From Octopus sinensis (Eukaryota): a stretch of 64,000 bases of DNA. Position 1 is the first letter of the stretch. Every line of letters starts with the position of its first letter. Where the stretch lies: positions 74,524,001-74,588,000 of the forward strand of contig NC_043000.1 in the NCBI RefSeq assembly GCF_006345805.1, read 5' to 3'. Made by a program: the position numbers and the translations under genes. Shown here in pieces: positions 2,318 through 63,999 of the stretch. The notes under the pieces were generated by a model. That model had not been told where the DNA came from and made no database searches. It worked only from the letters and a program-made list of their open reading frames with translations.

Positions 2318-2330
2318 CGCCACCCTGATC

Positions 2331-8460: not shown

Positions 8461-8526
8461 ACTGGACATAGACTTAACTGCATATAACTACATTACTGCT
8501 TTATGCTTTAGAGTGTGCTTCTTTTT

Positions 8527-8567
<41 letters not shown>

Positions 8568-8588
8568 TATATATGTAAGTATATATAT

Positions 8589-8673
<85 letters not shown>

Positions 8674-8694
8674 ATATATATACATTATTTATTA

Positions 8695-9110: not shown

Positions 9111-9367
9111 TATTATGAATCAGATATTTATTGGGTTAATTTATATATGTGTGTGTGTGTGTGTGTTCTATATATAAATATATATATATATAATGTATAT
9201 ATACAAAGTGTATATATCTGTATTTATATATTATATATGTATAATTTTAATCCAAACGGGAAAACAGAAAAAACAACAACACGTGGAACAATTACAGTAT
9301 TATTATTAATAGGCGCTCAGGAAAAGATGGAAGCAGGAAGGTATGACGTTTCGAGCGGAGCTCTTCG

Positions 9368-9430
<63 letters not shown>

Positions 9431-9496
9431 TTGTATACATTTGTATATATAATGCATACACACACACACACACATATATAATGCGTATATATGTAC

Positions 9497-9564
<68 letters not shown>

Positions 9565-9619
9565 TTATTATATATATATATTATATATATATATATATAT
9601 GTATATAATGTGTGCATTA

Positions 9620-20635: not shown

Positions 20636-21460
20636 ATGGAACAGGAAAAAAAAGAATTCGAAGCATCATACTTCGACAGAAGTTACACACAAGCTTCTGT
20701 CAATGTCTTGAATTGTCCTCCATGGACTGGAGTCACACTAATATGGTTGGTGCAACTAGAGGCAAGCTTCAAAGCCAACAGAATAACAAACGAAGAGCAG
20801 AAGTACAACATCATACTTAGTAATTTGCCGCCACCGCTAAGCAATGAAATCAGGGATCTGTTACTGAACCCTATGGAACTGGTGTCGTATTCTTCGATTA
20901 AGGAAAAAATATTGAAGCGTACGTCTAGTTCCAAGCAAAAGGAATTCGCAAAATTATTTAACAACGAAGAGCTGGGTAGTAGAAAACCCACGCAACTGTT
21001 ACGAAGGATGAATGAACTGCTGGGGAACCAGCAAATAGAGGAATCGTACCTCAAAGAGGTATTTTTCAACAAACTGCCGTATAAAACCCAAACCTTGCTC
21101 TCGGCATTAAAAAACCAGAATTCAATTCAACAAGTGGCGGACAGTATTTTGGAGTTATCGTCCAAAGAGACTATTAGTGCGATTCCATCCATTTCAAGTG
21201 AAATACAAGAATTGAAGAAATGTTACGAGCAACAATTTGACGTATTAACGAAGAAAATTGAGAGCTTACAACTGAAGAGAAACAGCCGTGCCGATCAGAA
21301 AAAAAATACAAAATGGCGCAGGAGATCGAAGAGCCCTAGCGTGAACAGAAACACCATATGCTGGTATCATGCTAAATTCGGAGAAAATTCTTTCAAATGC
21401 ATCAAACCCTGTGCGTTTGATTTCCTTGCTAAAAAAAAAGGAAATTCGGAAAACTTCTAA
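20636..21460 (+). CDS. gag: Gag of element C
   Basis: 274-aa ORF with [12 protein letters not shown] and the CWYH.KFG...KC..PC motif typical of the CsRn1 clade. Confidence 0.9.
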
Positions 21461-21468
21461 ACCATAGA

Positions 21469-24400
21469 TTGGATGCGACGAAGTCTGTGGATAACATTAT
21501 AAAAAGTCGCGTGTTTTTCGTATACGACTTAAAATTAAAAGAAAGATTTCTCGTAGATACAGGAGCAGCATGTTCAATATGGCATGTAAGGCTCTTAAAA
21601 CAGAAAACCAAACCCGTGTATATGACTCTTCAAGCGGTGAATCAGTCTGAAATTCAAACGTTTGGAGAGATCAGCTTAACGCTCGATATAAATTTACGAA
21701 GAGAATACAAATGGGTATTCATAGTAGCAGATTTGCCATATCCAATATTAGGAGCGGATTTTTTGGCGCACTATCATTTAATGGTAGATGTGAACAAACA
21801 AAAATTAATAGACACACAAACTTCCTTAAAAATTCAAGGAATGCGATGCAGAAGAACAACAATTAGTCCACTATATTTCATAGCGTCCTCAGAAAATAGA
21901 TACCACAAGATTTTGGAAAATTATCCAAAAATCACAAAACAGTTAGCTCTGAATACCACGTGTGCACATTCGGTAAAACATCACATCATCACACAAGGAC
22001 CACCAAGTTTTTCTAAGCCGAGAAGATTATCGCCGGAGAAATTGAAGGTAGCTAAGGCAGAATTTCGGCATATGATGGAGCTGGGTATAATCCGTCCTTC
22101 CAGTAGTAGCTGGTCAACACCATTAGTAATGGTGAAGAAAAATCTTATCGACTGGCGACCTTGTGGAGATTTCAGACAACTGAATGCGAAAACAAAGCCT
22201 GACAAATATCCAATACCCCACATAATGGATTTTGCAACTTCTTTGAGTAGTTGTACCATTTTTTCAAAGATAGATTTAGTCAGGGCATACAACCAAATTC
22301 CTGTGGCAGAAAACGATATACTGAAGACAGCCATTACCACTCCATTTGGTTTGTTTGAATTTCTTCGCATGCCTTTCGGATTGAGGAGCAGGCAAATACT
22401 TTTCAAAGGTTTATGGATGAAGGGACATGAGATTTACCTTTCGTGTTTGCTTATATAGATGATATTCTCATCGCTAGTCCATCGGGAGAAACACATGAAG
22501 AGCATTTTTAAAAAATCTTCAAACGATTAACAAAATTTGGAATTGTGATAAACCCATCGAAATGTGTTTTTGGTGAAACAACTATATCTTTTTTGGGTCA
22601 TCTTATAGATAAAGATGGAATTCGCCCATTACCAGAAAAAGTTGAAGCGATAAAAAACTTTCCTGTACCACATAATTTAAGGAAGCTCAGAGAGTTTTTA
22701 GGGATCGTCAATTTCTACAGAAAGTTCATTCCTAAAGTCACGGAAACCCTATATCCCTTAACTGAGCTATTGAAAAATAGGAAGAAAAAAAATGAAGCCA
22801 TAACCTTAAAAGAAACGGAATCGCAAGCCTTTAAAGAAATCAAAGAGAAACTGTGTAAAGCAACGCTTTTAAACCATCAGGTTCCTGAAGCGAAACTATC
22901 ATTGATGGTTGATGCTTCCGATGTTGGAATCGGTGGGGTTCTACAGCAATTTCATTGTAATTCCTGGCAACCATTAGCATTTTTTTCAAAAAAATTCAAG
23001 GCACCAGAAACTAAATACAGTGTGTTTGACAGAGAATTGTTGGCAGCTTATTTGTCAATCAAACATTTCAGACATCTTCTTGAAGGTAGGTCATTTACTT
23101 TATTCACTGACCATAAACCGTTAACATATGCATTGAAAAATTCTTCGGAAACATATTCTCCTAGAGAAATTAGACACCTTGATTTTATTTCACAGTTTAC
23201 TGTGGATATACGTTTTATCAAGGGGGTTGAAAATATAGCAGCGGATGCACTTTCTAGAATGAATGTAGATGCATTAAACTCATTAAGCACTATAGATTTG
23301 GAAGAAATGTCTAAGGATCAAGTTACAGATAAAGAATTTTCTGTATATAAAAATTCCGATTCAACTGCTTTAAAATTTAAAATGTTGCCGATACATTCGT
23401 GTAATTCACACATTTGGTGTGATATTTCTACAGGTTTTTCGAGACCATTTGTGCCTGAAAAGCATAGAAAAAATGTTTTTTCTAGCCTACATAATTTATC
23501 TCATCCAGATATAGAAGCTTCGTTAAAGTTAATATCTAGTCGTTTTGTTTGGCCTGGTATGAATAAGGATATTCATTCATGGGTAAAGTCATGTATGCAA
23601 TGTCAGAAATCTAAGGTGCAGTGGCACATCAAAGCACCATTAGGCACATTTGCAAATCCGGATGCGAGATTCCAACATATCCATATCGATATAGTGGGAC
23701 CCTTGCCTCCATGCGAGGATAATATGTATTTGTTGACATGTGTCGATGGTTTTTCGAGATGGCCCGAGGCTTATCCGATAAAGGATGTATCTGCAGTAAC
23801 TATAGCAAAAACCTTGTTTACCAATTGGATGTCTAGATTTGGCATTCCAAATACAGTGACAACAGATCGTGGTAGACAATTTGAGTCTAGCTTGTTCGCA
23901 GAATTCAATAAATTGTTGGGAATTAATAGAATTCGTACAACTTCATATCATCCACAGTCTAACGGAATGGTAGAAAGGTTCCATAGAGAGTTGAAAGCTT
24001 CATTAAGAACTTATTCTAATTCTAACGATTGGCTAGAGGCTTTGCCAGTGGTATTGTTGGGAATTAGAAGTGCGGTTATAGAAGAAACTATAAAGTATTC
24101 TCCAGCTGAACTTTTGTACGGAACAACATTAACTCTACCTGCTCAAATGTTCGAAGAAACTAAGTTTTTCAACGGAGATGTTAATGACTATGTAACTCGT
24201 CTAAAAAGATTTCTTACGGATATTCCTTCTTGTACATGAAAATTCCAAAATGTTAAAAGTTTTCTTCCTTCGGATATAAAATCTTGGACACATGTGTATG
24301 TCTGCAACGATGCAGCGCATAATTCGCTGAAATATAAATACACCGGACCTTTTAAAGTCTTATCAGTTACAGACAAAACTATGACTTTGGAAATGAATGG

Positions 24401-24746
24401 AAAGAAAGAAATTGTCAGTGTCGACAGAGTAAAAAAAGCTTATTTCGACCATTATCCATGTCATGAAACCAGAGATATGAGCAACACACATCAACACAAC
24501 GTGAAACAAAAATATGATATAGAAAACAACAAATCCGATGTTGAGGGAAAAGCGAAATCAATTCTAAAATCACCTACAAATGTAAAAAAAACTAGAAGTG
24601 GGAGAACTGTACACTTCCCAAGAAAACTTTTTTTTTGTAAAAAAAAATTTTTTTTATTCATGGATTATTTAACAACAAAAAAGAAAGAAAAAACATTATT
24701 TTTTTTCAGTGAAAGGAGAAGAACAATGTACGAACATGAAATGTAA
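21469..24746 (+). pseudogene. pol: Pol of element C with frameshifts near 22390-22500 and an in-frame TGA at 24237
   Basis: [56 protein letters not shown]; pol lies in the -1 frame at G_GAA_AAC (21448-21454). Confidence 0.92.
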
Positions 24747-24862
24747 GCGGAAAGACTAAATTCATATGTTTTAAACCTGTAAATGCATTTATATATAAAA
24801 AAAATATATGTATAACGAATTTCCTTCGCAAAATTGTGACAATTTTTCTGGTAAGGGGCTGA

Positions 24863-25695
24863 TGTAGCATGGCAGTTTTCAGCCATTTTGAAATATGACT
24901 ATAGCGATTTCTAATATCTTCACTGTGTGAAAGGCAAGGTAGAAATGATCTCGTTTGAGGTTACAACCATCTTTGGCCAACTTGTTCTTGTTGTAAACAC
25001 TAACCTGATTGGTTGACAGGTGACACGAGTGGTCTCTACATAGTTTGCGCCACTGGTTGACATGTGACACGAGGGTCTCTACGTAGTCTGCGCCACTGGT
25101 CGAACGTGACGCGAATTGTCTCGACTTATTTTGCGTCACAGTCTCGAAACAACCAATCACGACCTTTGGTTAAGATTCCATTTCTGAAGTTCGGTGAGCC
25201 ACTCAAACAGTATATAAAGGAGGGTTCGCAGACACCTTTGTCTTTAGTTCCAGTTCTTCTAAGAACTAACTTAGGCCACCTGCTGCTCAACTTAGAGATA
25301 TGCGTTGTCTCTGCTACTACCTGTTGCTACGCTAATGTATACAATCACTGAAAGCCTGCTATATTCGCCGTCTCCATCATCATGTATCGACTTCGCGTCA
25401 CCTCTAACATCTTTGCCACACAAACTGTAAGCCAAATTCCATTATTGACCCTGTGCTTCGTACTTTTCTATGTCAACCGCATATTGCGTACATACGTGCT
25501 AACGTTTACAAACTCCCAACATCAACACAGTTCTAAATAAAATAATGTTTATATCTCAAACAGAAGACTTTTTGTCAATCCACTATGTTCTATTGTTACT
25601 GCATGTATTTATGGCTTGTAATAACTCATTAAGAATGGGACTGCGTGCGATTGTATTCCCTATACAATACGACCGCATGTGGTCCTGTTTTTACA
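24863..25695 (+). repeat. 3' LTR of element C with 43-44-bp U3 tandem repeat (~25010-25110) and TATA box (25211-25218)
   Basis: TG...CA ends; last ~120 bp match 20361-20487. Confidence 0.88.
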
Positions 25696-26499
25696 CCCTG
25701 CCTCTCTGCTTTGATGGTGTCCTACAATTTCTGCAGCAGAGAAGCATATGCCCCATTAATTATGGTGCCCTTTGCTTAAAAATCCATCATCACTATACCA
25801 TGCTGGTCCCACCTTGCCTGTTGAGGGTTGGACACAAGCCCTTCTTTGGAGGCAGTGAGTTATCATACTTCCATTGCTTTAACTGGACTTTTGTCTCAGG
25901 ATCATAGTAATAGACCTATGTTTCATCCTGTGTAATAAGTCTGCTGAAAATGTCCTCCTTGTTTTCTGGGCACTTTGCCAAAAGAGCCTGGGAGCAATTG
26001 ACTCATTCCTGCTTCTGAAAAGATGTGAGCATCCAGGGAATCCATCATGCAGACAACTTCTGCATGTACAAATGGTTATCAATGATTTTTTTCCGTGGAC
26101 CCTACACTTATCATCATTTCTTGAGCTAATTGCTGAACAGTTATGCAGCGATCCTCTAAAATGGTGACTTCCACTTTATGGATGGTGTCATCATCAATGG
26201 CAGAATGCAGTCATCTGGGAATAGGAGCAGTTTCCACCGATGTCTGACCACATTTAAATTGACGATGCCAGTGTTTGACTACATCATATGATGGTACATC
26301 ATCACCATAAACTTCTTCTTCATCTCATCGAAAATCTTTTATGGTGTACAACCTTTCAGGTGTAAGAACCTGATCACTGATCTGCATTCAACTGCCTCCA
26401 TTATAACACCTCAGTAGCCATAAAAGATAAACAAATACTAGTGGAAAGCTGCAATTTACAATGTGACATGTAGAGACATCTATAATTATGCCTTTACAG

Positions 26500-40131: not shown

Positions 40132-42404
40132 ATAAAATATGAATATTGTATAATGTATTGAATGATATTTCTTTTTTAAATTTGAATTAAAATTGTGAAA
40201 TGGTGTTTGTAGAAAGATGTTTGTAAAATAGTGTTTGTTTGAAATGTAAAATAAAAATTAAAAATTACTACTTTTGATGAGAGTTTTAAATCCCTATATA
40301 TTTCCTTGGTTACTCTTCTGCAAAAATCCATAATATTCATACTCAATATCTGTCATATTATCTTGCATTCCAGTATAGTTCATGTAGATTAGTTGAGAAA
40401 TGTGAAAAGTGCATATACTATAGTATGAGAGTCTTGAAATTCACATGTCTTCTTGGTAATTCCTCTGTAGCAATCCATGACACTTTTGTATAAAATTCAT
40501 TACATTATACGGTAATCCAAATATAGTTCTTAATACAAAATCAAACTATATTTTAAATTATATTTGAAGCCATGAATTTGTAAATATTTCTTTATTTGGC
40601 ACTCAGGGCACCAACATAGAGGGGACACTACAAGGACAGACACAACACCACAGTGGGGACAGTAAACATAAAAATGCAGACGATTTCCTTGAACTGGTGC
40701 TGAATTCGAAGTGGTCCCAAGTTGTTACCTCCCCCACAAGGGGTAACAACACTTTGGATCTGCTACTTACCGCTTCTCCTGAAACAATCATTAGTGTCGC
40801 TACCGAAGAACCTTTGGGTGACTCTGATCATTCCATGATCATGGCCGACTTGTCTCTGATTGGTTGTAACAAAAAACACAACCATCTTCAGATTGCCCGC
40901 TTTGACTGGAATAAAGCAAACTGGAGCTCTTATTGTACGGAGCTGCAACGCCCAAACTGGCGTGAATTTTATGCCTCTGGAGATGTGGACACTATACTCC
41001 AGAACATTCTGAATTCAATATGGGCAGCATGTGCAGCATCAGTACCACGCAAGCACAAAAAACCACCCAATAGTGCAATTTGGGAGACTGCAGCAGTCCG
41101 ACTTGCCAGGAAAGAATGCCGTAATGCTGAACGGGAATACAAATTGCACAAATCAGAGAGCAACAGGAAAAAGCGCAATAGGTCAGCCAACCACCTCAAG
41201 CAGGTGACAAAAAAGGCAGTGCTTGAATTTGAACAATGCATTGCAGCTAACCCTGACAGCAAAGGGTTCTGGAAGTATGTGCACTCAAAGCAGAGACCCC
41301 ACTCTCCTGTTGGTCCCCTTCGCAATCCCCACACAGGACAGATTACTGGCAATCCCGAAGAATGTGCAGAAATCATTGCTGGATGCTATGCCGGCATCTT
41401 TACTGTCGAAGACCAAAATGTTCCATCATCATCACCACTGACATCGGACTCTATATCTTCTATGCAATTTACACCAGCAATGCTGCAACGCCACCTAAAG
41501 AATAAACGCAATTATGCCTCTCCTGGTCTCAATGGTGTTACATACCTACTTCTCAAACGCGGTGGGTACTTTCTTCTAAGCCAACTTTCTCTATTCTTCC
41601 AATTCTGTCTTGACAATGGTGTTACTCCAGAACAGTGGAAAACTGCCAGTGTCATGCCTCTGTTCAAAAAAGGCGACCGCACATCGCCTGTCAACTATCG
41701 CCCCATCAGTCTTACTAGCTGCATCACCAAACTGATGGAATCCTGTATCAGAGAAACCCTCTGGAACTTCTGGAAGTCTCACAGCCTCATCCAGCCATCA
41801 CAATTCGGATTTGCAAATTTGACTGACCAATTTAGATGAGTTCTAGTTTGTATACACCATTAACGGTTATAAGTTACTAATCTCTCATTAGACAGCACAC
41901 ACATACATGTATGTATGCATACATGTATGTGTGCATACATGCATACCTGCATACATGCATATATACATTATGTCAGGGAAACCCTCTGGAACTTCTAGAA
42001 GTCTCACATCCTCATCCAGCCGTCACAATTTGGATTTATTCCTAACTCCAACTGCTGTAATCAACTCATTGAGTTTCTTGAGGACATTACCCATGTGGTT
42101 GATGAAAGGAGCACAACAGAACAAGGAAATAGGAAACAGAAGTGCAACAGGGTCTTACCTGACAGGGGATGAAGTCGGATGGCCTTCAGCCAACTTGCTC
42201 GCGTTTCGTCGTCTCGGTGCCTTCGTCCGGTCTGTCGCCACCGCTCGATGCCGCACGTGCCTTTTTGTCGCTCACTTCCGCTTCCGCCGGCGCATGCGCC
42301 CTGCAAGACCTGTAAGCATCACTTCCGCTCCCGCCCGTCCCGTCACACTCCTTCATCACCACACCACACGCCCCCCTGATCTATAAATCACTGAACCGGC
42401 TTCC

Positions 42405-45326
42405 TCACTCGCTCCCGCACCCGAAACTGGTTTCATAATCAGCCAGCCAGGGAGGAGGGTGCCGCTCCCTCTGTGGTCGCAGCGCGACCCTAGGACTTGT
42501 TTCAGGTGTGTTGCTGTCGACCTCGTCATCCTGTCGGTTGTTTTCGTTCTGCCCACTGTTGCTTGTCCCATCCTCTGGGGCATGGACAATCCTCCGTATG
42601 TCCAAAACGTGGCGTGGCATACCATCGATGGAGATGTTATTCTTCGAATTTACGGAGGTTATTGTCCCCTTTCCCCATTGCGATGTACACCGTGCGTTTG
42701 GGGGTTTTACCCAGACTTCCTCCCCGACCCGCACGAAGGCGTGCTCTTCCTCTGCCCCGGGTTGCATTGATTTAGTACACGGATGCCTCCACTCGTACCT
42801 GAATATTGCTCTGTGTGGCACCGATTCCTCAGCCTGTCCGGATCGGGGAGACAAGTTGTACCAAAAAACTGCTTCAAGCGGCGAAATGTGCCCTCTTTCC
42901 GCTATGGCCTTGACTGTCCGATGGTGCCTCTCCACGATCCCGTTACCGCCCGGCCTATACGCTGCTCTGAACAAGCGTCGCACGTTCCACCGATCAAGCA
43001 TAACCACCAATGCTTCCGAACGAAATGCCGCCCCGTTGTCCATCAGTAGTTCTTCCACGGGACCTCTCTCTAAGAATATCCCGTTCAGGATCTGCATGAT
43101 CTCGTCAGCAATGCCCGATCTCAACTCCCTCCAAACGGCCAGCCGGCCCGGCCCACAGTCGACCATGGAGAGGTACGTTCGCTGACGGTAGTGTGTCACA
43201 TCCACAGCTAGCCTTTTCCAGTTCTGCTCCATGGAAAGGCTTCCCTGTTCATGCCCACACGGAGCAGGGTCGATGGACTGACACCTGTCGCAGCTCCCGA
43301 CCACCTTCCGGACGCTTCTCCTGGTCACGTCAGCATCAATCTTTTTTGCCAGATACAGGGTCCTGTCCACACCCATGTGATGCATAGCGTGCAATTTCTT
43401 CAGCTCAGAGTCATCCAACCGACACGCCGCAGCTATCCCTCTCCGCGCCTCCTCCGGTTCTTCCAACCACGCCCTTTTCACCCTGGTCAGTACGTCCGCC
43501 TTGTTTTTCTCCGAAGGCACGAAGACCACGTTCAGCTTCAGTCCGAATTCGGCGATCAATTCACCTAGAACTCCTAGACGGCGCTTCACTAACATCTCCG
43601 CAGCACCTTTCGTCCGCACTCTCCTGTCACCGGTGATCACTGATCCTACCCAGCCAAGCACAGTGGCCGAATCCATCCGCATTTCAATCGTGCGCAGCCC
43701 CCATTTCAAGGCCAAGTTCACCCCTTTCAGCAGCGCGTCTAGTTCGGCGACATTGATGTGGTTGAAATCATCTGCTTTTCGAAGCCAGGCCGCGTCCTCC
43801 ACCGCAGTGCCTTCAATTGCCAACACCACCCCTATCGCTATACTGCTAGCATCACACCAGACAGTCCCGCATTTCGTCCTGGGCACGTACCAGTTCCCCC
43901 TGACCGGGTCTTCCGCTCTTGTCCTCTCTAGGATCTCCTGCATCATCGCCACCGTCCCTTCTCCCACCTTGTCGCCCCACCTCTCTCCTTCTGCTCGTCT
44001 CTTGGTGAAACTACACGCCGTGCGCAGCCATCCAGCGATCGGGTAGTGACCGACCAACTTCCCACACACCGAGAACAGCTCTCTCCTGCTGACGCTGGAA
44101 CTCAGCTCCGGGATTTCATTTCCTCTCCGGAACACCAATTCACCTGATCTATCTCTTCGCAGCTTCAGCCCCAGCGCGGCTCCCCCTTCAATCGACTCCG
44201 GTGGCTTAGCAATCAGTCCGAACTTCTCCAGATGTCTCACTACCTCGTTGGCTGCCACTACAGTGTCGTCCACCAAAATGTCGTCAATGTAGGAGCTGGT
44301 GGCCTTTCTGATCTTGCCGTCTTTCCCTAGGACGGACCTAAGCACTGCCGCCATGATCTTCGGAGCAGAATTCAGCCCGAAACCCAGCCTGGTTAGACAG
44401 TACGTCCGGCCCTTGTACCGCACCAGCTGATATTGCCATAGTTTGTCGCTCACATGGAGCTGCAAGTATGCCGATCTCAAGTCGACAATCGTCGCTGCCT
44501 CAGTCGACTGTCTCCACTTGCGTAATGCCTCACCACAAACGTCTGTCGCCTCACCTCCCGTGTGACACGATATGTGCTGGTTTAGCTCCCTGAAGTCCAG
44601 CACCGGTCTGACTTTTCCCTTCGTAGGCTGCACCACCGCCATCAGGGGTAGCACTCCGCCCGCTACCTCCTCCTTCCAAGGGACAAGGACCCCTTCCTCG
44701 ATCCACCTCTCCACCTCGTCTTCAAACTCAACCCTGGCGTGGCCTTTCAGAGTATGCTGGTAACAGCTCACCCTGTTCTCCAGTGTCGGGGGCTCGCCCT
44801 TCCATTTCCACTCTATCGTCCACCGCTGACCATCGAACGCCGCCTGAAAGTCCTTGTCCTCGATGGTGTAAGCGGCGCCGTCCCTCGCGGGGCTCTGCTC
44901 CCTCTGGTGATCCTGACTCGCAGTGCACGACGCCCCCACGCTTCCGAACGTGACCTTATTTCCCACAACGCTGACGCCACCGAGGCAGTTGATGGCGTCC
45001 ATCCCCATCACCACATCAACTCCATTTATCACACGTTCGGCCACAATTGCCTGTAGCCTTAGTGTCGCGCCGCGCACCACTATCTCTACCGTGCTGCTGC
45101 CTCTGCAACGGATTTCGCTGCCGTCGACCGCCCGGACACTACACACCCCGTTCCATTCCTTCGTCACCCTCGAAGTCACCAGGGTGGTCGTACAGCCCGT
45201 ATCCACGAGGGCCTTGAACGCCTCCCCCTCGGCCTCCACGTCAATCACTGGCAGTGTCTCCAATAGCGCCTCTACTCGTTTGAGGGGAAAGTTCGAGAGG
45301 CAGCAACTTCCCCGCGGTCGTTTCCC
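42405..45326 (-). CDS. pol: Pol of B (PR-RT-RNase H-IN), probably reached by -1 frameshift
   Basis: 976-aa ORF: LVDTG, RPVLDFRELN, YIDD, WCDASS/HINVAEL/NKAD, HHCC (H..H..C..C), DVT..MDNG..ERHH. Confidence 0.95.
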   Translation of the reverse strand, partial: GKRPRGSCCLSNFPLKRVEALLETLPVIDVEAEGEAFKALVDTGCTTTLVTSRVTKEWNGVCSVRAVDGSEIRCRGSSTVEIVVRGATLRLQAIVAERVINGVDVVMGMDAINCLGGVSVVGNKVTFGSVGASCTASQDHQREQSPARDGAAYTIEDKDFQAAFDGQRWTIEWKWKGEPPTLENRVSCYQHTLKGHARVEFEDEVERWIEEGVLVPWKEEVAGGVLPLMAVVQPTKGKVRPVLDFRELNQHISCHTGGEATDVCGEALRKWRQSTEAATIVDLRSAYLQLHVSDKLWQYQLVRYKGRTYCLTRLGFGLNSAPKIMAAVLRSVLGKDGKIRKATSSYIDDILVDDTVVAANEVVRHLEKFGLIAKPPESIEGGAALGLKLRRDRSGELVFRRGNEIPELSSSVSRRELFSVCGKLVGHYPIAGWLRTACSFTKRRAEGERWGDKVGEGTVAMMQEILERTRAEDPVRGNWYVPRTKCGTVWCDASSIAIGVVLAIEGTAVEDAAWLRKADDFNHINVAELDALLKGVNLALKWGLRTIEMRMDSATVLGWVGSVITGDRRVRTKGAAEMLVKRRLGVLGELIAEFGLKLNVVFVPSEKNKADVLTRVKRAWLEEPEEARRGIAAACRLDDSELKKLHAMHHMGVDRTLYLAKKIDADVTRRSVRKVVGSCDRCQSIDPAPCGHEQGSLSMEQNWKRLAVDVTHYRQRTYLSMVDCGPGRLAVWRELRSGIADEIMQILNGIFLERGPVEELLMDNGAAFRSEALVVMLDRWNVRRLFRAAYRPGGNGIVERHHRTVKAIAERGHISPLEAVFWYNLSPRSGQAEESVPHRAIFRYEWRHPCTKSMQPGAEEEHAFVRVGEEVWVKPPNARCTSQWGKGTITSVNSKNNISIDGMPRHVLDIRRIVHAPEDGTSNSGQNENNRQDDEVDSNTPETSPRVALRPQRERHPPPWLADYETSFGCGSE
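45268..45326 (-). promoter_or_regulatory. -1 programmed ribosomal frameshift signal (G_GGA_AAC, 6-nt spacer, H-type pseudoknot)
   Basis: Heptamer in the gag frame with pol in -1; stem 1 ggggaagtt/aactttcccc, stem 2 gcctct/agaggc. Confidence 0.8.
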
Positions 45327-46036
45327 TGGCCGCAATCACGGGCAATGTGCCCTGTCTGCCTGCATCGATAGCAAACTGGCCCCGGCTGCGTACAGTCCCG
45401 CGCCATGTGCGGTCCTTGGCATTTAAAACATCGTCCTGAGAACGGCCGCTCTCGTTGCACGGTGGGCTTCCGTACCTCTTTCTCGAGACGTCGTCCGTCT
45501 TTACGCGCCTCCGTCACCGCCATCACTATCCCCTTCCGCCCCGAGTGTCTCGTCAACCCGCGAGCATGAGTTACAAGCTCGCTCAATGGCATCTTTTTGA
45601 CCCCGGGCAGTTGTTGTAGGTGAATCCCTACATCATCGGGGAACCCATTTACAAATGCCAGTCGGGCTGCTCTCTCCATTCCTTCTCCGGCAAACCCGGC
45701 CAGAGTCGCTAGCCTTCTAGCTTCCGCCGCAAAATCATCCACCTGGCCTCCCGTCCACCTGATTGCACCCAGCTTAGCGAAAGCTGTGTACTCGCATTCT
45801 GTGTATGCGTCACACAAGCGCCGCTCTATATTCCCATCGCAGAGCCGTTCTTTTTCGTCCATTTCCAGGTAAAGCGACAACGCACTTCCTTCCAAATACA
45901 GGGCCATAAGACTCGCCACGTCGCTTATGCCCTGCAGTCTCGCCACCAGCCTGATTTTCTGAATCCAGGCCACTACATCGCCTTCGCCGTTAAAAGGTCT
46001 GACGACGTCACTGGCGATCCTAATTTTTGCCGACAT
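45272..46036 (-). CDS. gag: Gag of B with two zinc knuckles
   Basis: MSAKIRIAS... 254 aa; CFKCQGPHMARDC and CYRCRQTGHIARDC. Confidence 0.92.
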   Translation of the reverse strand: MSAKIRIASDVVRPFNGEGDVVAWIQKIRLVARLQGISDVASLMALYLEGSALSLYLEMDEKERLCDGNIERRLCDAYTECEYTAFAKLGAIRWTGGQVDDFAAEARRLATLAGFAGEGMERAARLAFVNGFPDDVGIHLQQLPGVKKMPLSELVTHARGLTRHSGRKGIVMAVTEARKDGRRLEKEVRKPTVQRERPFSGRCFKCQGPHMARDCTQPGPVCYRCRQTGHIARDCGQGNDRGEVAASRTFPSNE

Positions 46037-46080
46037 CGTGTTGACAAAAATGTTGAAAAAAATGTGAACGCTGACTAAAT

Positions 46081-46092
46081 GCCGAAATAGCT
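46081..46092 (-). promoter_or_regulatory. Putative primer-binding site of B, complementary to tRNA-Phe nt 1-12
   Basis: Plus strand gccgaaatagct abuts the 5' LTR, same 12-mer as in A. Confidence 0.78.
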
Positions 46093-47630
46093 TGTGGTTG
46101 ATGAAAGGAGCACAACAGAACAAGGAAATAGGAAACAGAAGTGCAACAGGGTCTTACCTGACAGGGGATGAAGTCGGATGGCCTTCAGCCAACTTGCTCG
46201 CGTTTCGTCGTCTCGGTGCCTTCGTCCGGTCTGTCGCCACCGCTCGATGCCGCACGTGCCTTTTTGTCGCTCACTTCCGCTTCCGCCGGCGCATGCGCCC
46301 TGCAAGACCTGTAAGCATCACTTCCGCTCCCGCCCGTCCCGTCACACTCCTTCATCACCACACCACAACCCAAATCACTGATCGCGGATCCTGGGTGGAT
46401 GTTGTTTACCTGGACTTTGCTAAGGCTTTTAACTCTGTGCCACACAAAAGACTTATGTTGAAACTCTCTGCGTTGGGCGTAAGAGACGATCTCTATAACT
46501 GGTTGAAGTCCTTTATTTTCGGCCGAAAAGAGGTTGTCACAGTTCTAGGACAGCACTCTTCACCCTATGAGATGACATCTGGTGTACCACAGGGATCTGT
46601 TCTTGGCTCCCTTTTATTTGTTGCATATGTTAATGACATAGATGCCAACTTAAAGAATGCCACAGTGCTGAAATATGCAGATGACATCAAGCTGTACCTC
46701 GAAATAAAGAGGTCAAATCCTGTACACTATGGATCTCTATTGCAAGCAGACCTGGACACAATGCAGCAGTGGATCATGGACTGGCAACTCAAGCTGGCTG
46801 TGGACAAAGGTACCACCATGCATTTTGGGAGGAGAAACCCAGCGTCCACCTACTCCCTCCACAACACTAGTCTCAAAAAGTCTTCAAGTGAACGTGACCT
46901 GGGTGTTATTGTCGACAGTGATTTGCGTTGGACAAAACACATCGCTAAAATTGTCAAGAAGGCTGAGGGTGTCTTGGCATCACTCACCAAATCCTTTGTG
47001 AGCCGCTCTCCAGCTATCTATCTGCGGCTTTATATAGCTATGGTAAGACCTCACCTGGAATTTGCATCACCGGTCTGGAACCCCTATCTTGCCCAGGACA
47101 TCAATCGTCTGGAAGCTGTTCAGCGACGTGCAACCAAAAGAATACCCTCCATCAGGCATTTGCCATATCCTGAACGCCTTACTTCCCTGGGCATGGACAC
47201 ATTGAAACTCCGACGTCTGGCAGCTGACTTGGCAGACACCCATAAAATTATCAACCATCGCACAAACAATAACTCTGAGCACCTCTTCAAACTCCACCCA
47301 TCTAACACCCGTGGACATATTTACAAAGTAAGAAAACAGCACAGCTCTCATGACTTCAGGAAACATTTTTTCACGCTGAGAGTTGCTGAAGCGTGGAACA
47401 AACTGCCGGCATCGGTTGTTAGTTGTCGGAGCACTGCATCCTTCAAAACTTCCATGCTTCCTGAGATTCGCCAACACTACACTTGATTTTCTCCCCTCCA
47501 TACACACACAAGCATGTTCACTTTCCAGACATTTCTACATTACTGCATGTACTTTATATGCACTTTCTGACAAGTTGTGGTGCACCTGAGCACTGTATAC
47601 AATAATTTCATTATTATTATCATTATTATT

Positions 47631-49380
47631 AAAACGGATGAGAATGAATATTATACAATAATGAAAAATGAAATGGCTGCATGGGCCCCACTCCTCATGC
47701 ATTGGAACGTTTTTACACACTGTTATTACAGTCTTGTTATTTTATCTGGTTCTTTTTCATTAATTATCATTGTTTCTTCAAAAATACATTTTCCTTTCTC
47801 CCCCCCCCCTTTTTTTTAACGCTTCATATACTGCTCCAGTTCTATCAGATCGATTACTGGTGGCAGTTCATTGAACTCCACTATCGCTATGCCTGGGTCA
47901 ATTCTATCCCTGCACTTATCTTTAAATTTTTCGTAGGCTACCTTATCGACCACCAAGTCCTTCACTCTCTCAGGGTACGTGTCTCTGGGAATTTTTACCC
48001 TTATGATGTTCTTGAACTTCACGATTTCCTTCTCCACTTCCTTGTTTTTTGAATAAGTAAAAAAATTCCACTGTTTCTTCCCTCCTCTAGGCTTTCTCCT
48101 TTCTTCCTCTCCCAATATAGGTTAACCTATACTCTTCTCTGAGGCTGGAACTTTCTTCTTCTCCATCTCCACTGTATACAGTTTCTCCATCTCACCCTCT
48201 TGTAGCTGAGTTCCTGAAACTTCTGCCAAATCATATGTCGTCCTCATCCTTGCTTCCTCCTTCTCTGGCTCATTGTCACACACCTTAATTATTTTTTCAC
48301 TTCCCTCCTCCGTCTTACTTTTATCATCTTTCTTTCTTGTTACATCTTTCCTTTCTACCTCTTCTTTCTTCTTTTTCTGGTTAGTCGGTGGTGGGCTTAC
48401 CCTACTGCTCCTCCTTCTTTTTCTTTCCACTATCGTGAAACTTTCTTCCACTGTTTTTTCACTACTCTCGACCAGCACTGCCTGTTCGACATTTTCTTGA
48501 ATCTCTCTCTGTTGTTTCTGTGGGCATCTCACCGTCATGTGTCCCTTTTCGCCACATTCAAAACACACAGGCAGTCTGCCCTCCACCTTCATTCTTAGTG
48601 AGAAACCGTCAGGCAACACTATCTCCTCGGTTATTCTATTGAGGTTTTCTACTGTTGCCTGGATTGTTAATTCCGATCCATAGCCCCAGTAGTCCAGCCT
48701 ATTTGTTCTGGTGGCCTTCAGTATTCTGGCCCCTTCATGTTATACATAATGGCTGTGTTTAGCCATGCCTCCTCCAGCTCAGGGCGCACTTGACCTACCC
48801 GAACTCTCGCCACACGTTTTCCGCAATACGATGGCAAAAGAATCCATTCATCTGAACGAATTGCCTCTGTTGCATGTCTTATTGCTTCCTCCTCCGATAT
48901 GAATCGCACATCCACAGTGGCATACCTTCTGCCTCTTGTTTTGAAGGTTATCACCTTTTTAATGCCTTCCAACACTTTTTCAATTTCCTCTACTGCTGCT
49001 ATTTCTATTTTCCTTGTAGTGACCTTCATGGTCTTGTAGGTTGCCGTTTTCTTCATTACACTGTTCGTCAGCTCTTTGGGTGTCATTAACTTTATCGTTT
49101 CACCCTCCTTCTTTATCAGCTTCTCTCAAGCTTTCATTTTCTTGGCTTCGACTTTTATTTCAAAAGTCTCTAGTGTTCTTTCCTCTGCTCCTCTTCCAGT
49201 TGCGGCTGTATAGCTGTGGCCGCCCACTGGCGCCTTCTCCATTTTCCTCAATGGGAAAATTTAACAACACAAAAATTTAACAATATTAACAATGATATCA
49301 ACGAACAGCAATAATCAACAATAATTTTAACGTTCTACTCACAAATATAACTCAGCTTCAATAACTCAACTCACTGTGAA
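47631..49380 (-). mobile_element. ORF1-only L1/Tx1-like element (HAL1-like), with point lesions
   Basis: ORF1 from ~49243 (RGRRYATVDV, CFECGEKGHMTVRC) continuing past an in-frame stop at 48122 to 47816, then ~185 bp of 3' UTR; no ORF2. Confidence 0.7.
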
Positions 49381-49682
49381 TTTGTAAAATTATAAATTGG
49401 TCACAGTATTTCTTTTATATTTTTATTTTTGTAATTGAAAAATACCAAATAAAATTTTGGATTTTTAAATTTAATTCAATTATAACTGTCCATGGTTCTT
49501 GTACTACAACCATGACTATAATCTACATCCTGTAGTGGAACCCTGGGGTCCTGGTTTCAGGGTTTGAGGAGTATGGAATCACCTCTTAGCCACTATTGTT
49601 CCCAGTTCTACTCAGGCCCAGAGTGGTAGCACCTGTAAGGATCCCAGCTATGGGTTAACTAGCAAACCCTGCTGTTGTCGCT

Positions 49683-49950
49683 GTATTTCCTTGTGGCAAC
49701 CTTCATGGTCTTGTAGGTCACCGTTTTCTTTATTACACTGTTTGTCAGCTCTTTGGGTGGCGTTAACTTTATTGTTTCACCCTCCTTCTTCAGCAGCTTC
49801 TCTCAAGCTTTCATTCTCTTGGCTTCGACTTTTATTTCAAAAGTCTCTAGTGTTCTTTCCTCTGCTCCTCTTCCAGTTGCGGCTGCATAGCTGTGGCCGC
49901 CTGCTGGCGCCTTCTCCATTTTCCTCAATGGGAAAATTTAACGACACAAA
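49683..49950 (-). mobile_element. Second fragment of the same Tx1-like ORF1 5' region
   Basis: Closely similar to 49010-49272. Confidence 0.8.
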
Positions 49951-54187: not shown

Positions 54188-55368
54188 TACACCTTATTAA
54201 TTTTATATGTTTTTATATACATACATCATATATGTCTACATATACAGATACTACACAGCATGGTATGAATCTTACATATTCATACAAACACACACACACA
54301 GAGTTCAATTTACAGAAAACAAAAGACAAAGACAGGTGTGGGAACAACAAGCAGGTGTATAAGTTTAAAGTTCGGGAAGAATGGAAAAGCTTTTTACATT
54401 TCAAGCCTATGCTCTTTGACAGAAAGGATTAAGAGGAAAAAAACAGAGAGAGAAGGAAAAATATAGAGAGAGAGAAAAAATGTGTATTTGCTCATTTTTT
54501 TTTAATATGAAACCCAGTTCAAAAGAGAATACAGTTCCAATAACCCTTTTCTGAAGAAACCCAGAAAGAAAACCTGTAGAACAATGACTAAACAACCAAT
54601 TAATCAAACAATTAAAAAAACCAATTAATCTAAAAGAACACAACTTTCCAGAAATGAGAAACACTCCAGGGAATACATTTAACTCTTAACTCAAACCATA
54701 TAATTACAACCAATATGCTCAGACAGCAAAAACCAGCCTCCTCACAATTCAAATATAATTAGTAACACTGATAATTCACAACAATGTAATTAAAACAAAC
54801 GTTTTTAGACCTAGTCCAGAGGAACAGGGTCATACATTGAAACAAAACATACAGGAAAATCCCAAGTAATAAACTTAGCAAAGAAAACTTTCTTAACAAA
54901 AATCAACATGCTAGAGAAAGGACTAATGAAATTGAAGACAATATTACAGAATTTTGCCAACAATTGTGACTTACAGAAGCACTACTTGATTATAATAATG
55001 ATGACGAATCACTGGTCAAAAACGAAAGCAATTATTTTATTCTGTTTAGGGAGAGTCATTCTCTTTTAGTGCCTTATTATTTAACACACTCACTGGTTCG
55101 ATTTCCACTAATTTAGTAACTTATTTTTTCTAAAATTTTTGTTGCATCTTGCAACCTTTTCAATAGTCATTGACTCTGTCCATTATCAGAGCTGCATTCT
55201 TTTTATTTGTTTGTTTGTGTGCATGTGTATACGTATATGTATGTGTATATGTATGCATGCATGTATGTATGTATGTGTATGCATGTATATGTGTGTGTGT
55301 GCATATATATGTATGTGTATGTTTGTATGTATGTATGTAGTCTGCATATTCATGTGCTTGTGTGTTCA

Positions 55369-55410
<42 letters not shown>

Positions 55411-55740
55411 TATATGTGTGTGTGTAGATCATGAGATCATTTGCATCACAGAACTTGTGTGTAGTTGGGTGTGTACCTCTGTCTCCTTGTGTGTGCATGT
55501 TTGAATGTGTCGATTTGTATGGGTTTGTGTGACGATGTACATGCGTCTGTAATGTATGGATGTGTGTCTCCATACATGTCTTTGTGTGTGTGAAGTGTGC
55601 ATATGAAGTGTATATGGTCATGTTTTCAGTCTTCATTTGTGTATGTATGTGTGTATGTGTATGTGCTTGTCTGTCCGTGTTACTTATGTGTCTGTCTATC
55701 TATTTATCTATCTGTTTACTTATATATCCATTTACCTACA

Positions 55741-55799: not shown

Positions 55800-57290
55800 A
55801 CAATTCTGCCTGTGTATATTTAAACTGTGGGTATTGGGGTATGACTACCGTCTAAAAATATTTTCTATTTAGTACTGGGGATGTTTCATTTATGAGGATG
55901 TACCCCTGTATTCGTCTGAGTGTTGGGTCCTTCGGGTACTTTGATAAAATGTGGATGTCAAGTTGACCCAGTGTGCCTCCATGTTGGTCTTTGGCATGTT
56001 GATAAAGTATGGAAGACTGTTTTCGCCATCATGTTGTCTCTCTGCAATGCTTCTAGATGTCTATCATATTCTTGTCTTTACAAGCCCCCTCTATGCACCT
56101 TATGCTGTAGACTACATTTCTAGTTTTACAGTTAATGCCAGGGTTAATCTTATATACCTATTTCTTTATTACCCACAAGGGGCTAAACATAGAGGGGACA
56201 AACAAGGACAGACATAGGTATTAAGTCGATCACATCGACCCCAGTACGTAACTGGTACTTTAATTTATCGACCCCGAAAGGATGAAAGGCAAAGTCGACC
56301 TCGGCGAAATTTGAACTCAGAACGTAACGGCAGACGAAATACCGCTAAGCATTTCGCCCGGCGTGCTAACGTTTCTGCCAGCTCGCCGCCTTATATACCA
56401 TCTTATATACCATGCAGTTGTCATTGGTGCATGTAGCATTCTCAAAGGGGTATGTCCTATATAGTTGTGATCTGATGGAGCTCCCTGGCTTTTCAATGAT
56501 CTTAATGTTGAGCCTGGCCTCCTTCAGAGCTTTCCAAAATCTTCAGGCTAGTTCTCCATGGGCTGTGGCCACTACAAACATCACTCCTGAATATTTTTCA
56601 CCGTTTCCTTTGTCACAAACTCTTTGTATCCTATTCCAGTCTTTACTTTTATATCTAGGGCAAGTACCATTTGTTTCATTATATATAATGCTAGTTAACT
56701 TCTACCTAGCTCCCCTGTATACCCCAAACCTTTCTTTCTGATCATATCCAGAGAATTGCATGCAGTGCATGAAGTTCTGTACATGTTTCTTTATTTCATA
56801 GGGTTTGCATAGTGGGGACACTTTGTTCATTATCCTAAGTCTGCTATCAGTATGTTGATTTTCATGTTGTGTGACAAAGCCGAGTTCTTGTGAATAACAT
56901 ATTTAGAAGCTATGGGTTTCATGAAATAGGAGTGGAAGAGCTTCTCTCTGTTGATCACAGTCTCTAACCAAAGTTCAGTATCAAGGACAGGAGTCTCTTG
57001 TTAGGGTGTCTAGTGAAGTAATCTATAGTTACCTTGATACTTTGGTGGATTGAGTTAGCTATGTGCTGGATGCTCTCCATTATGCTCCTCTCGGTTTCTA
57101 CATTACAGTTACAAGAGTTTGTCCTCACTAGAATATTAATGTCATCTACATACTTACAGTAAAGCAAAACAGTTGTGGATTGTTCCGCTAAGGATTGTTT
57201 AAGTTTTCTGTCCCACCAGGTCATGAAGAATCTGGCCACATCTCCAGCCGATGCCAATGGCTGCACCTTGAACCTGCATGTATAGTTTCT
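55800..57290 (-). mobile_element. Penelope-like element (RT YVDD and GIY-YIG remnant) with SINE insertion
   Basis: FMTWWDR..LYCKYVDDINI; KPIASKYVIH.NSA; VYSIRC; SSILYQH. Confidence 0.75.
56160..56390 (-). mobile_element. tRNA-derived SINE
   Basis: ggcggcgagctggcagaaacg head, gagttcaaat B-box-like motif; a second copy lies at 57785-58015. Confidence 0.85.
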
Positions 57291-57784
57291 TGTTAAACTT
57301 TACTATGTGGTTCTTCAAAATAACTAAATGAGTGAAAATCGAACTGGTGAGTGTGTTAAATAATAAGGCACTAAAAGAGAATGACTCTCCCCGGACACAA
57401 TAAAATATGCTTCAACACATGAGTTCTCATAAAGAATCTTGCAAACCAAATGCAAAAACGAAAAGCAATTATATTCCACCTAAAACACTTGATGACTTTT
57501 GCGACCATAGTCTGAATTTCCTGAATAATACTATACATAGATAAAAAATATACTCAAACCTCCACAATACTGAATAGAATATACTGTGGTACATAGACCA
57601 ACATACTGGAAGGTTCAGAATTCTACTTCAAAGAAGGACAGCAATTCATTATTAAGACAGGATTTATTTGTGCATCCAAAAATTTAATATGTGTGATATC
57701 TTGTTCAGGATGTGAATACAACTATATAGGTCAAACAGAGAATAACACTGCATAAGGAACATAGCTATTTCCCAAGACAAACAC

Positions 57785-58015
57785 CTATTTCTTTATTACC
57801 CACAAGGGGCTAAACATAGAGGGACAAACAAGGACAGACATAGGTATTAAGTCGATTACATCGACCCCAGTGCATAACTGGTACTTAATTTATCGACCCC
57901 GAAAGGATGAAAGACAAAGTCAACCTCAGCGGAATTCGAACTCACAACGTAATGTCAAACGAAATACCGCTAAGCATTTCGCCCGACGTGCTAACGTTTC
58001 TGCCAGCTCGCCACT
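57785..58015 (-). mobile_element. tRNA-derived SINE
   Basis: Same family as 56160-56390. Confidence 0.85.
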
Positions 58016-62877: not shown

Positions 62878-63526
62878 GTGTTAATTAAATTTGACCTGGC
62901 GATGATCACTGGAAAGAAGAGTCAAGACATAATCAGAGAGAAGACATGACCCAGTGTGATAGTTACCATAAAATATTCTCTATAGCTTCTTTGCTATGTG
63001 ATGGAGTGTCCGCTTTGTGATATATTTACACACCAGTTAAAGAGAAGTAACTATTGAAATTAGTCCTTACTCATTTTACCCCGTTTCAGACATCATTTTT
63101 TTGAATCTTGAAAATTATCAACTTTGACATTTGTCTGGAAAAAATTGACTTGGAATTCATCAGAAAAGAGAATATTGATTGTTAAACACTAAAAATTATC
63201 CAAATATTCTATTAGCAACCTCAAATACAATTGGATCAAAATAGAGGAAAAATTTCTTGAAAAAAGCGGACCTGCCACGTGACTACGTTCCAGACCCCCT
63301 TAACTTCAACAACAACTATGTTGGTCAATTTTTACACCTAAATATAATGCGGCAATACAAAACGATGATGCAATACTTGAAATGCAATGGTCGCAAACTG
63401 GTTGGGGAAAAATAATGCAAAATCAGAAGTTACGCATTTTGTCCCAGTTACTAATTTTGCCCCCTCCCATATATAATATATGCCTATGTATATGTATATA
63501 CATTCATACATATATATGTATATATA

Positions 63527-63630
<104 letters not shown>

Positions 63631-63654
63631 ATATATATATATAATATATTATGT

Positions 63655-63999
63655 GAAGGCGCATGGCTCAGTGGTTAGAGCGTCGAGCTTACGATCGTGA
63701 GGTTGTGAGCTCGAATCCCGGACGGGGCTGCGTGTTGTGTTCTTGAGCAAGGCACTTTATTTCACGTTGCTCCAGTTCACTCAGCTGTAGAAATGAGTTG
63801 CGACGTCACAGGTGCCAAGCTGTATCGGCCCTTGCCTTTCCCTTGGACAACATCGGTGACGTGGAGAGGGGAGGCCGGTATGCATGGGCGACTGCTGGTC
63901 TTCCATAAAAAACAACCTTGCCCAGACTTGTGCCTCAGAGGGTATCTCTCTAGGTGCAAATCCATGGTCAGTGCCTGACCGAAGGGGGTCTTTACCCTT
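63655..63999 (+). mobile_element. Young tRNA-derived SINE with CORE-like central domain
   Basis: A box tggctcagtggttag, B-box-like gctcgaatcc, tgttcttgagcaaggcact core; CpG-rich. Confidence 0.85.

Follow-up and report, generated by a model that had tools for sequence, protein, structure and literature searches.

Accounts of retroelement priming have so far recognized a short closed list of modes, in which the primer is a tRNA 3′ end, half of a tRNA that has been cut in the anticodon arm, or part of the element's own transcript (self-priming). The elements copia and Ty5 are primed by a 5′ fragment (a half tRNA) of initiator tRNA-Met that is cut in the anticodon arm, and the primer of the self-priming element Tf1 is 11 nt long. 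The Tf1 mechanism is summarized in the literature (Levin 1995). The fungal element FunCo1 carries a site complementary to an internal region of tRNA-Lys (PMC5445492), and the literature also reports primer-site motifs for which the primer is unknown, namely the polypyrimidine tract of Dictyostelium Skipper and the conserved hairpin of fungal GalEa. The priming modes found in the literature we searched are those using a tRNA 3′ end or an internal tRNA region, Tf1 self-priming, and the Skipper and GalEa motifs. Here, we describe LTR retrotransposons in which a 12-mer next to the 5′ LTR likely serves, throughout the lineage, as the minus-strand primer-binding site for the 5′-terminal 12 (or 10) nt of a tRNA. 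We place the probability of this reading at about 0.75, with both the priming event and the nuclease being inferred in the absence of small-RNA, cDNA, or particle data.

A complete member of the lineage, here called element A, is present in the window (the whole 64-kb stretch of DNA that was analyzed). Its features, all on the minus strand, are listed below.

42094–46367, minus strand: element A, a complete LTR retrotransposon of 4274 bp, with an LTR pair, a target-site duplication (TSD), and intact gag and pol ORFs
46368–46372, minus strand: TSD TGGGT, 5′ side, 5 bp
46093–46367, minus strand: 5′ LTR (TGTGG...CCACA), 275 nt, 100% identical to the 3′ LTR
46081–46092, minus strand: candidate minus-strand primer-binding site AGCTATTTCGGC, the complement of tRNA-Phe(GAA) nucleotides 1 to 12, kept in relatives
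45272–46036, minus strand: gag ORF, 254 aa, with a CCHC zinc knuckle, intact
42405–45335, minus strand: pol ORF, 976 aa, intact, in the −1 frame and overlapping gag
42369–42382, minus strand: polypurine tract AGATCAGGGGGG plus a CG dinucleotide, followed by the 3′ LTR, with the same layout in relatives
42094–42368, minus strand: 3′ LTR, 275 nt, 100% identical to the 5′ LTR
42089–42093, minus strand: TSD TGGGT, 3′ side, 5 bp

Because the 275-nt repeats are bounded by a TGGGT duplication, they are the LTRs of one 4274-bp insertion, and the identical pair together with the 5-bp TSD fixes the LTR boundary independently. The plus strand at 46081–46092 reads GCCGAAATAGCT, which corresponds to AGCTATTTCGGC on the element sense (minus) strand, and this 12-mer directly adjoins the 5′ LTR, which terminates in ...CAACCACA. 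The leader that separates the LTR from the gag ATG (46036) comprises 56 nt and contains no TGG. The pol product carries aspartyl protease, reverse transcriptase, DUF7047, RNase H, and integrase domains, and with its TG...CA LTRs, TSD, gag and pol genes, and purine tract, element A meets the general definition of an LTR retrotransposon. Its identical LTRs and intact ORFs make recent activity likely, although this is inferred from sequence alone.

A prior sequence-only reading of the window had claimed that AGCTATTTCGGC directly follows the 5′ LTR, that no TGG-type site is present, that the complement of the 12-mer is absent from the LTR, and that a purine tract and CG precede the 3′ LTR. All four claims held: the first on the basis of the sequence, the LTR pair, and the TSD; the second for the 56-nt leader; and the third for any position in element A with up to two mismatches allowed. 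The further claim that Tf1-type self-priming is excluded held in the form that such priming is not supported in the six elements tested.

Element A resides within a LINE reverse-transcriptase ORF, the halves of which occupy 40697–41839 and 46371–47486 on the plus strand. Within this interrupted ORF (40697–41980 and 46371–47486, plus strand), a short coding stretch (the part ending ...IQPSQFGF) is doubled upstream of element A, with the two copies parted by a TA/TG-rich simple repeat; the doubling therefore points to an earlier small duplication or insertion.

The window also contains a second, decayed member of the same lineage, here called element B.

2024–5339, minus strand: element B, with TSD GTTTC at 5340–5344 and 2019–2023
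5063–5339, minus strand: 5′ LTR (TGTGGGA...CACTACA), 92% identical to the 3′ LTR over 273 nt
5051–5062, minus strand: candidate primer-binding site, the identical 12-mer AGCTATTTCGGC, directly after the 5′ LTR
2331–5018, minus strand: gag-pol remnant with one large internal deletion of ~0.96 kb relative to element A
2024–2317, minus strand: 3′ LTR, with an indel relative to the 5′ LTR

The deletion removes most of gag and the start of pol, and the remaining pol frame carries at least four interruptions that leave five ORF pieces. The LTRs of element B cannot be aligned with those of element A, and the two sequences diverge immediately past the 12-mer. Exact copies of AGCTATTTCGGC occur twice in the 64-kb window, both times at a junction between a 5′ LTR and internal sequence (those of elements A and B), where simple arithmetic for 64 kb and both strands gives ~0.008 exact 12-mers expected by chance.

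Other repeats in the window were recorded as well. A Ty3/gypsy-type element at approximately 20375–25690 (plus strand) matches RVT_1, RT_RNaseH_2, Integrase_H2C2, and rve, with its coding region divided among several ORFs. Its LTRs are very short (~107 nt), and a canonical TGG primer site is located 1 base past the LTR, which indicates that the other elements of this host prime in the usual way. This element is flanked by a 630-bp direct duplication (19740–20369 and 25696–26315, 96% identical) that far exceeds a normal target duplication and might reflect recombination or an assembly artifact. Additional direct-repeat pairs that are 86–95% identical, 128–300 nt long, and 0.6–1.6 kb apart are found at 9982–10897, 49009–49950, 56260–58012, and 8804–10606, and the window is rich in TA/TG microsatellites (e.g., 160–760, 8468–8734, 55196–55416, and 63466–63659).

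A protein search with the pol sequence of element A yielded 643 proteins at E ≤ 1e-20 among 8000 candidates scored. These include hundreds of relatives at 48–65% identity, many of which reside on element-length contigs (~4 kb), and the lineage is abundant, with young copies carrying intact genes. The lineage pol has the domain order PR-RT-RH-IN, which is the order expected of Ty3/gypsy elements, and among 13 pol sequences tested, DUF7047, RVT_3, and rve were matched by all 13, Integrase_H2C2 by seven, and RT_RNaseH or RT_RNaseH_2 by none. The neighboring gypsy-type element (20375–25690), by comparison, matches Ty3-type RNase H and Integrase_H2C2 domains. The Pfam families Peptidase_A17 and DUF1758/DUF1759 define BEL/Pao elements, and the test for this superfamily was not met, since none of these families was matched by the 13 pol sequences or by the gag of element A. 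The best matches of the lineage to solved structures were weak and were to retroviral integrases and reverse transcriptases. Placement was attempted with Pfam, NCBIfam, and solved structures, without a phylogeny, and no superfamily assignment resulted.

Junctions were then read for a set of 14 distinct elements, consisting of elements A and B plus 12 relatives for which DNA was obtained, with the later junctions read by eye. The named hosts of the relatives are Argonauta hians, Petrolisthes manimaculis, and Oratosquilla oratoria (a cephalopod, a crab, and a mantis shrimp, respectively), and the remaining relatives are from unknown organisms. Variants of the site, named for their last six bases, derive from assemblies GCA_054771915.1 of A. 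hians (TTCGGC), GCA_034508575.1 of P. manimaculis and GCA_046742065.1 of O. oratoria (CTAGGC), and GCA_046766455.1 (CCGGGC). The five types are represented by six elements (TTCGGC), five elements (CTAGGC), and one element each (CCCGGC, CCGGGC, and CCGGCC), as listed below in the order of LTR end, site, and next base.

TTCGGC type, element A: CCACA, AGCTATTTCGGC, A
TTCGGC type, element B: CTACA, AGCTATTTCGGC, T
TTCGGC type, Argonauta L001: TCAAG, AGCTATTTCGGC, C
TTCGGC type, L007/L008: TTACA, AGCTATTTCGGC, A
TTCGGC type, L131: TCACA, AGCTATTTCGGC, A
TTCGGC type, L133/L134: TTACA, AGCTATTTCGGC, C
CTAGGC type, Petrolisthes L002: CTACA, AGCTATCTAGGC, C
CTAGGC type, Oratosquilla L003: TCACA, AGCTATCTAGGC, A
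CTAGGC type, L005: CCACA, AGCTATCTAGGC, A
CTAGGC type, L006: CCATA, AGCTATCTAGGC, C
CTAGGC type, L130: TTACA, AGCTATCTAGGC, A
CCCGGC type, L004: CTACA, AGCTATCCCGGC, C
CCGGGC type, L009: TTACA, AGCTATCCGGGC, A
CCGGCC type, L132: CTACA, AGCTATCCGGCC, A

All 14 elements carry the consensus AGCTAT-NNN-G(G/C)C at the same position between the LTR and the internal sequence. Columns 1 to 6 (AGCTAT), column 10 (G), and column 12 (C) are each present in 14 of 14 elements, and column 11 is G in 13 and C in one. Variation is otherwise confined to column 7 (T in six, C in eight), column 8 (T in 11, C in three), and column 9 (C in seven, A in five, G in two). When 40 nt on either side of the site were aligned, only a few A residues at the LTR end proved to be conserved, and conservation stops sharply at both ends of the 12-mer; the LTRs and leaders of the 14 elements are otherwise unalignable. 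The pattern AGCTAYNNNGGC has exactly one match in each of the first nine loci, and even for the looser pattern AGCTANNNNGGC only 0.02–0.10 chance matches are expected per locus.

The distance from the LTR to the gag ATG is 13 nt in L009, 16 nt in L130, and 27 nt in L002, which corresponds to the 12-mer and a few more bases. Leaders of this size therefore leave no room for another primer site. At the opposite end of the elements, the purine tract and the initial TG of the LTR are separated by CG in six of the seven relatives for which the start of the 3′ LTR could be read.

Some relatives exhibit additional features. The related element L007/L008 is present in a metatranscriptome, and one metatranscriptome contig (L007, 4595–5857) fuses the retrotransposon transcript to a tubulin-tyrosine-ligase-like gene, for which read-through or chimeric transcription and an assembly chimera are possible causes. 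Repeated palindromic TCTAGATCTAGA-like motifs occur near the primer site at L131 1700–1750, L133 840–870 and 920–970, and L007 35–55. These motifs are found in relatives with longer leaders or U5 regions and are lacking in elements A and B, and it is conceivable that they act as dimerization or packaging signals. A search for relatives in viral contigs found none.

The first 12 nucleotides of tRNA-Phe(GAA) in both human and Drosophila are identical to the complement of the TTCGGC-type 12-mer, with the match starting at nucleotide +1 of the tRNA, as judged from a published forward primer for human Phe(GAA), GCCGAAATAGCTCAGTTGGGAG (PMC10505166), and a published 5′ probe for Drosophila tRNA-Phe-GAA, GCTCTCCCAACTGAGCTATTTCGGC (PMC7038984). 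Because neither ARAGORN nor Rfam identified any tRNA gene in the 64-kb window, the identity of tRNA-Phe for the host of the window rests on the conservation of this tRNA from fly to human. The L009 site AGCTATCCGGGC (CCGGGC) is the exact complement of nucleotides 1 to 12 of tRNA-Lys(UUU): the human tRNA-Lys3 gene starts GCCCGGATAGCTCAG... (PMC8715211), and a zebrafish 5′tRF-LysTTT, printed as a 30-nt fragment, provides a second source for this 5′ end (PMC4688932).

To find partners of the CTAGGC and CCCGGC types, metagenome contigs were scanned for GCCKRGATAGCTCAGTNGG, and ARAGORN was run on the 120 loci returned. The tRNA genes at these matches were nearly all tRNA-Phe(GAA), with a minority of bacterial tRNA-Thr, and most were bacterial or plastid. 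Only two eukaryote-type tRNA-Phe genes (L015 and L101) were recovered. The gene at L101 423–495 is a eukaryote-type tRNA-Phe(GAA) whose D arm (AGCTCAGTTGGGAGAGC) is that of human and fly tRNA-Phe and whose acceptor stem is well paired, and it starts with GCCTAGATAGCT, which is the exact complement of the CTAGGC-type site over nucleotides 1 to 12. The contig on which it resides contains few ORFs and has SLC12-like exon pieces. This partner comes from an unidentified eukaryote that has not been shown to be a crustacean; the CTAGGC elements include those of a crab and a mantis shrimp. The complement of the CCCGGC site of L004, GCCGGGATAGCT, was found only in plastid or bacterial tRNA-Phe, bacterial tRNA-Thr, and the heads of termite SINE-like repeats, and in no animal nuclear tRNA; for the CCGGCC variant of L132, no tRNA match was found. 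A partner tRNA, such that the site is the complement of nucleotides 1 to 12 of a real tRNA, was thereby identified for 12 of the 14 elements.

The invariant columns of the site pair with U8–U12 and G1/C3 of these tRNAs, and the variable columns pair with acceptor-stem positions 4 to 6, at which the partner tRNAs differ from one another. Pairing with the tRNA never runs past nucleotide 12 into U5, as the LTRs end in ACA, AAG, or ATA where CTG would be required. The complementarity to tRNA 5′ ends, the position of the site, its conservation across the family, and its switching between tRNAs are all directly shown by these data.

The metagenome scan returned other loci that resemble tRNAs. The second eukaryote-type gene (L015 1213–1289, plus strand) is a tRNA-Phe(GAA)-like gene that starts with GCCGAG and has the 5′ end GCCGAGATAGCT; its T arm contains a short tandem duplication, and a T run provides a terminator. 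A pseudogene or an atypical isodecoder is the probable explanation. Among L011–L129, the tRNA 5′ pattern is also present at about 50 additional loci from termite-gut metagenomes, where ARAGORN calls no tRNA. Two such loci that were read (L012 1600–1669 and L014 3180–3256, both on the minus strand) each form the head of a SINE-like repeat of tRNA origin (GCCGGGATAGCTCAGTCGGTATAGC...), and both continue into a common body that is not tRNA. These loci in gut metagenomes are probably host (termite) DNA.

We propose that these small elements (~4.2 kb) form a separate lineage of metazoan LTR retrotransposons in which the site would pair with nucleotides 1 to 12 of a cytoplasmic tRNA, comprising the 5′ strand of the acceptor stem (nucleotides 1 to 7), U8, A9, and three bases at the start of the D stem, rather than with the 3′ CCA end. 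The predicted partner in elements A and B is tRNA-Phe(GAA), and elsewhere in the lineage it would be tRNA-Lys(UUU) or variant tRNA-Phe 5′ ends. Extension from a 5′ end is impossible, which makes cleavage of the tRNA necessary, and a cut after nucleotide 12, inside the D stem, would generate a 3′-OH that abuts U5 and from which DNA synthesis would proceed into U5. Plus-strand strong-stop DNA would then copy the primer only to the tRNA 5′ end before running off; under this model, the site is exactly 12 nt long and its conservation ends there because strong-stop copying ends at the tRNA 5′ end. Alternatively, the cut may fall after nucleotide 10, provided that integration removes the AG beside the LTR as a terminal dinucleotide. 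Should each end lose two bases during integration, the AG of AGCT would be the counterpart of the CG at the other end. The integrated LTR of the Argonauta element ends in CAAG followed by AGCT, which is compatible with both the 10-nt and the 12-nt primer models.

Both the use of the site for priming and the identity of the nuclease are inferences. The cut might be made by the RNase H of the element acting on the annealed tRNA, in a Tf1-like reaction in trans, or by a host nuclease that yields a short 5′ tRNA fragment, and the sequence data do not discriminate between these two sources. Most reports of short 5′ tRNA fragments describe longer species with ends in the D loop, and, to our knowledge, no nuclease has been shown to make the D-stem cut needed for a 10- to 12-nt primer. 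Also counting against the proposal are the two site variants that lack an animal nuclear tRNA match, the unidentified source of the CTAGGC partner, and the leader RNA: the predicted fold of 171 nt around the site is no better than that of shuffled sequences (z = 0.22), which gives no hint of a Tf1-like folded substrate. In eukaryotic tRNAs, the pairing face of G9 often carries a methyl group, and we speculate that this methylation could be the reason why only tRNAs with A9 serve as partners. A bolder reading, which we consider possible, is that the element's own RNase H releases the 5′-terminal 12 nt of an intact host tRNA as a primer once that end has annealed to the genomic RNA, in a Tf1-like reaction in trans, that the host tRNA used (Phe, Lys, or others) is changed via three bases of the site, and that this system is widespread in invertebrates.

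With regard to the sequence-only reading, the start that it gave for tRNA-Phe(GAA) held for human and Drosophila as established with the published oligonucleotides, and the survey of the motif in relatives that it called for found conservation at the same junction in 14 of 14 elements. Further support is provided by the variable middle positions, which switch to match the 5′ ends of tRNA-Lys(UUU) and of a tRNA-Phe variant. Its central claim, that priming is by a 10- to 12-nt 5′ fragment of tRNA-Phe cut in the D-arm, is supported on the sequence tests, all of which it passed, with priming and the nuclease remaining inferred, and its suggestion that the primer might be 10 nt if AG is removed by integrase still stands beside the 12-nt alternative.

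The alternative that survives best is a sub-variant of the proposal above rather than a true rival. By this account, a mature tRNA is not the primer; instead, a short 5′ tRNA fragment already made by the host would serve, or a tRNA-derived SINE with the same 5′ end would supply the primer through its transcript, and the RNase H of the element would not be involved in making it. Consistent with this possibility, tRNA-derived repeats with such 5′ ends exist in animal genomes (e.g., the termite-gut metagenome loci L012 and L014), and 5′ tRNA fragments are abundant in animals, as exemplified by zebrafish 5′tRF-LysTTT (PMC4688932). However, the zebrafish fragment is 30 nt rather than 12 nt in length (PMC4688932), and conservation that ends exactly at nucleotide 12 fits a cut made at the end of an annealed duplex, although the two sources of the cut still cannot be distinguished. 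We regard a pre-made primer as unlikely.

A second alternative, which we judge to be very unlikely, is that the 12-mer is some other cis signal beside U5, such as one for integrase end recognition, packaging, or dimerization, and that the primer or the priming mechanism has gone unrecognized. In its favor, palindromic character is seen in AGCT and in part of the motif, the AG beside the LTR could belong to the end recognized by integrase, and no experiment ties the motif to priming. However, such a signal is not expected to vary exactly where tRNA acceptor stems vary, nor to match three tRNA 5′ ends at 12 of 12 positions. Moreover, the entire leader is 13–27 nt in L009, L130, and L002, so an alternative primer site is not available, and direct adjacency to U5 is what defines the position of a minus-strand primer site in the literature.

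Tf1-type self-priming would require that the 5′ end or another part of the element's own transcript folds onto the 12-mer and is cut by RNase H, with the likeness to tRNA being coincidental. The lack of a TGG-type site is in keeping with this mechanism, but it is all but excluded because a complement with up to two mismatches is absent from the six elements tested, LTRs included, and from elements A and B. In addition, the site is conserved among A, B, and the relatives despite the lack of any sequence relationship between their LTRs, and three variants match exact real tRNA 5′ ends in register with nucleotide +1.

Three other readings were rejected. Priming by the tRNA's own 3′ end after capture of its 5′ strand was ruled out by inspection, as no pairing is possible between the 3′ acceptor strand of the L101 tRNA-Phe and the sequences that end U5 in CTAGGC-type elements (those compared were CTACA, CACA, CCACA, CCATA, and TTACA). 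CCA is added to the 3′ end of such a tRNA and was included for this inspection. For element A, where the tRNA-Phe sequence was available only for its first 22–25 nt, the same exclusion is made by analogy. A hidden canonical site was rejected because the leaders are only 13–56 nt and contain no TGG-type site, and a chance origin can be dismissed because the exact 12-mer is confined to the LTR junctions of elements A and B within the 64-kb window, and each related locus has a single match to the motif, which is invariably at the junction.

We found no description of a primer site complementary to a tRNA 5′ end in the open-access literature searched, although subscription journals and Repbase reports were outside this scope and a prior description is not excluded. 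A BEL/Pao survey and the Odin paper do not mention primer sites, and a recent large survey sought only complements of tRNA 3′ ends as primer sites. Within the limits of that search, the tRNA 5′-end site is likely a new form of tRNA-primed reverse transcription, and no open-access full text contradicted the sequence-only reading, which knew of no description of this priming mode.

If the proposal is true, then the tRNA 5′ end would represent a fourth priming mode, and the priming step would be more flexible than has been supposed. It would also predict a D-stem cut in tRNA-Phe and tRNA-Lys and a 10- to 12-nt tRNA fragment with a defined function. The proposal would explain why primer-site calls are missing for these elements in pipelines whose searches are restricted to complements of tRNA 3′ ends, and host defense that directs 3′ tRNA fragments against primer sites would miss this lineage.

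The tRNA 5′-end site can be compared with each of the known systems. Canonical 3′-end priming, as used by retroviruses, Ty1, and Ty3/gypsy elements, likewise involves a site that abuts U5, a host tRNA, switching between tRNAs, and a purine tract before the 3′ LTR. In contrast, the lineage of element A uses the opposite end of the tRNA, without CCA/TGG pairing, and would need the tRNA to be cleaved. The test for membership in this class was not met, as TGG is absent from the leader of element A and the leaders of L009, L130, and L002 are too short. Skipper and GalEa resemble the lineage in having non-canonical, lineage-conserved motifs at the position of the primer site, but no complementary cellular RNA is known for theirs, whereas the lineage of element A has exact partners in tRNA 5′ ends.

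As with copia, Ty5, and FunCo1, a host tRNA is matched somewhere other than its 3′ end, and an internal cut would create the priming 3′-OH. Their sites are internal, near the anticodon arm, and the primer is approximately half a tRNA, whereas the lineage of element A matches nucleotides 1 to 12 and would use a D-stem cut, a 10- to 12-nt primer, and tRNA-Phe and tRNA-Lys(UUU) instead of initiator tRNA-Met. The copia/Ty5-type test was not met, given that the complement maps to nucleotides 1 to 12 of tRNA-Phe or tRNA-Lys (no initiator tRNA sequence was included in the comparison).

Tf1 and Tf2 of fission yeast are similar in that the site is short and lacks TGG, the primer is the 5′-terminal stretch of an RNA and is wholly paired, and it must be freed by endonucleolytic cleavage where the duplex ends. 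The Tf1 primer comes from the element's own transcript, and its complement is in the LTR. The lineage of element A differs in that no complement was found in the six elements tested and the match is to the 5′ ends of host tRNAs; the reaction would be in trans. Membership in the Tf1-type self-primed class was accordingly not met (no complement with up to two mismatches in six elements, nor in A or B). For the proposed tRNA 5′-end-primed class, in which priming itself is inferred, the sequence criterion of a 12-nt site abutting U5 is met by 14 of 14 elements, and 12 of these 14 have a partner tRNA.
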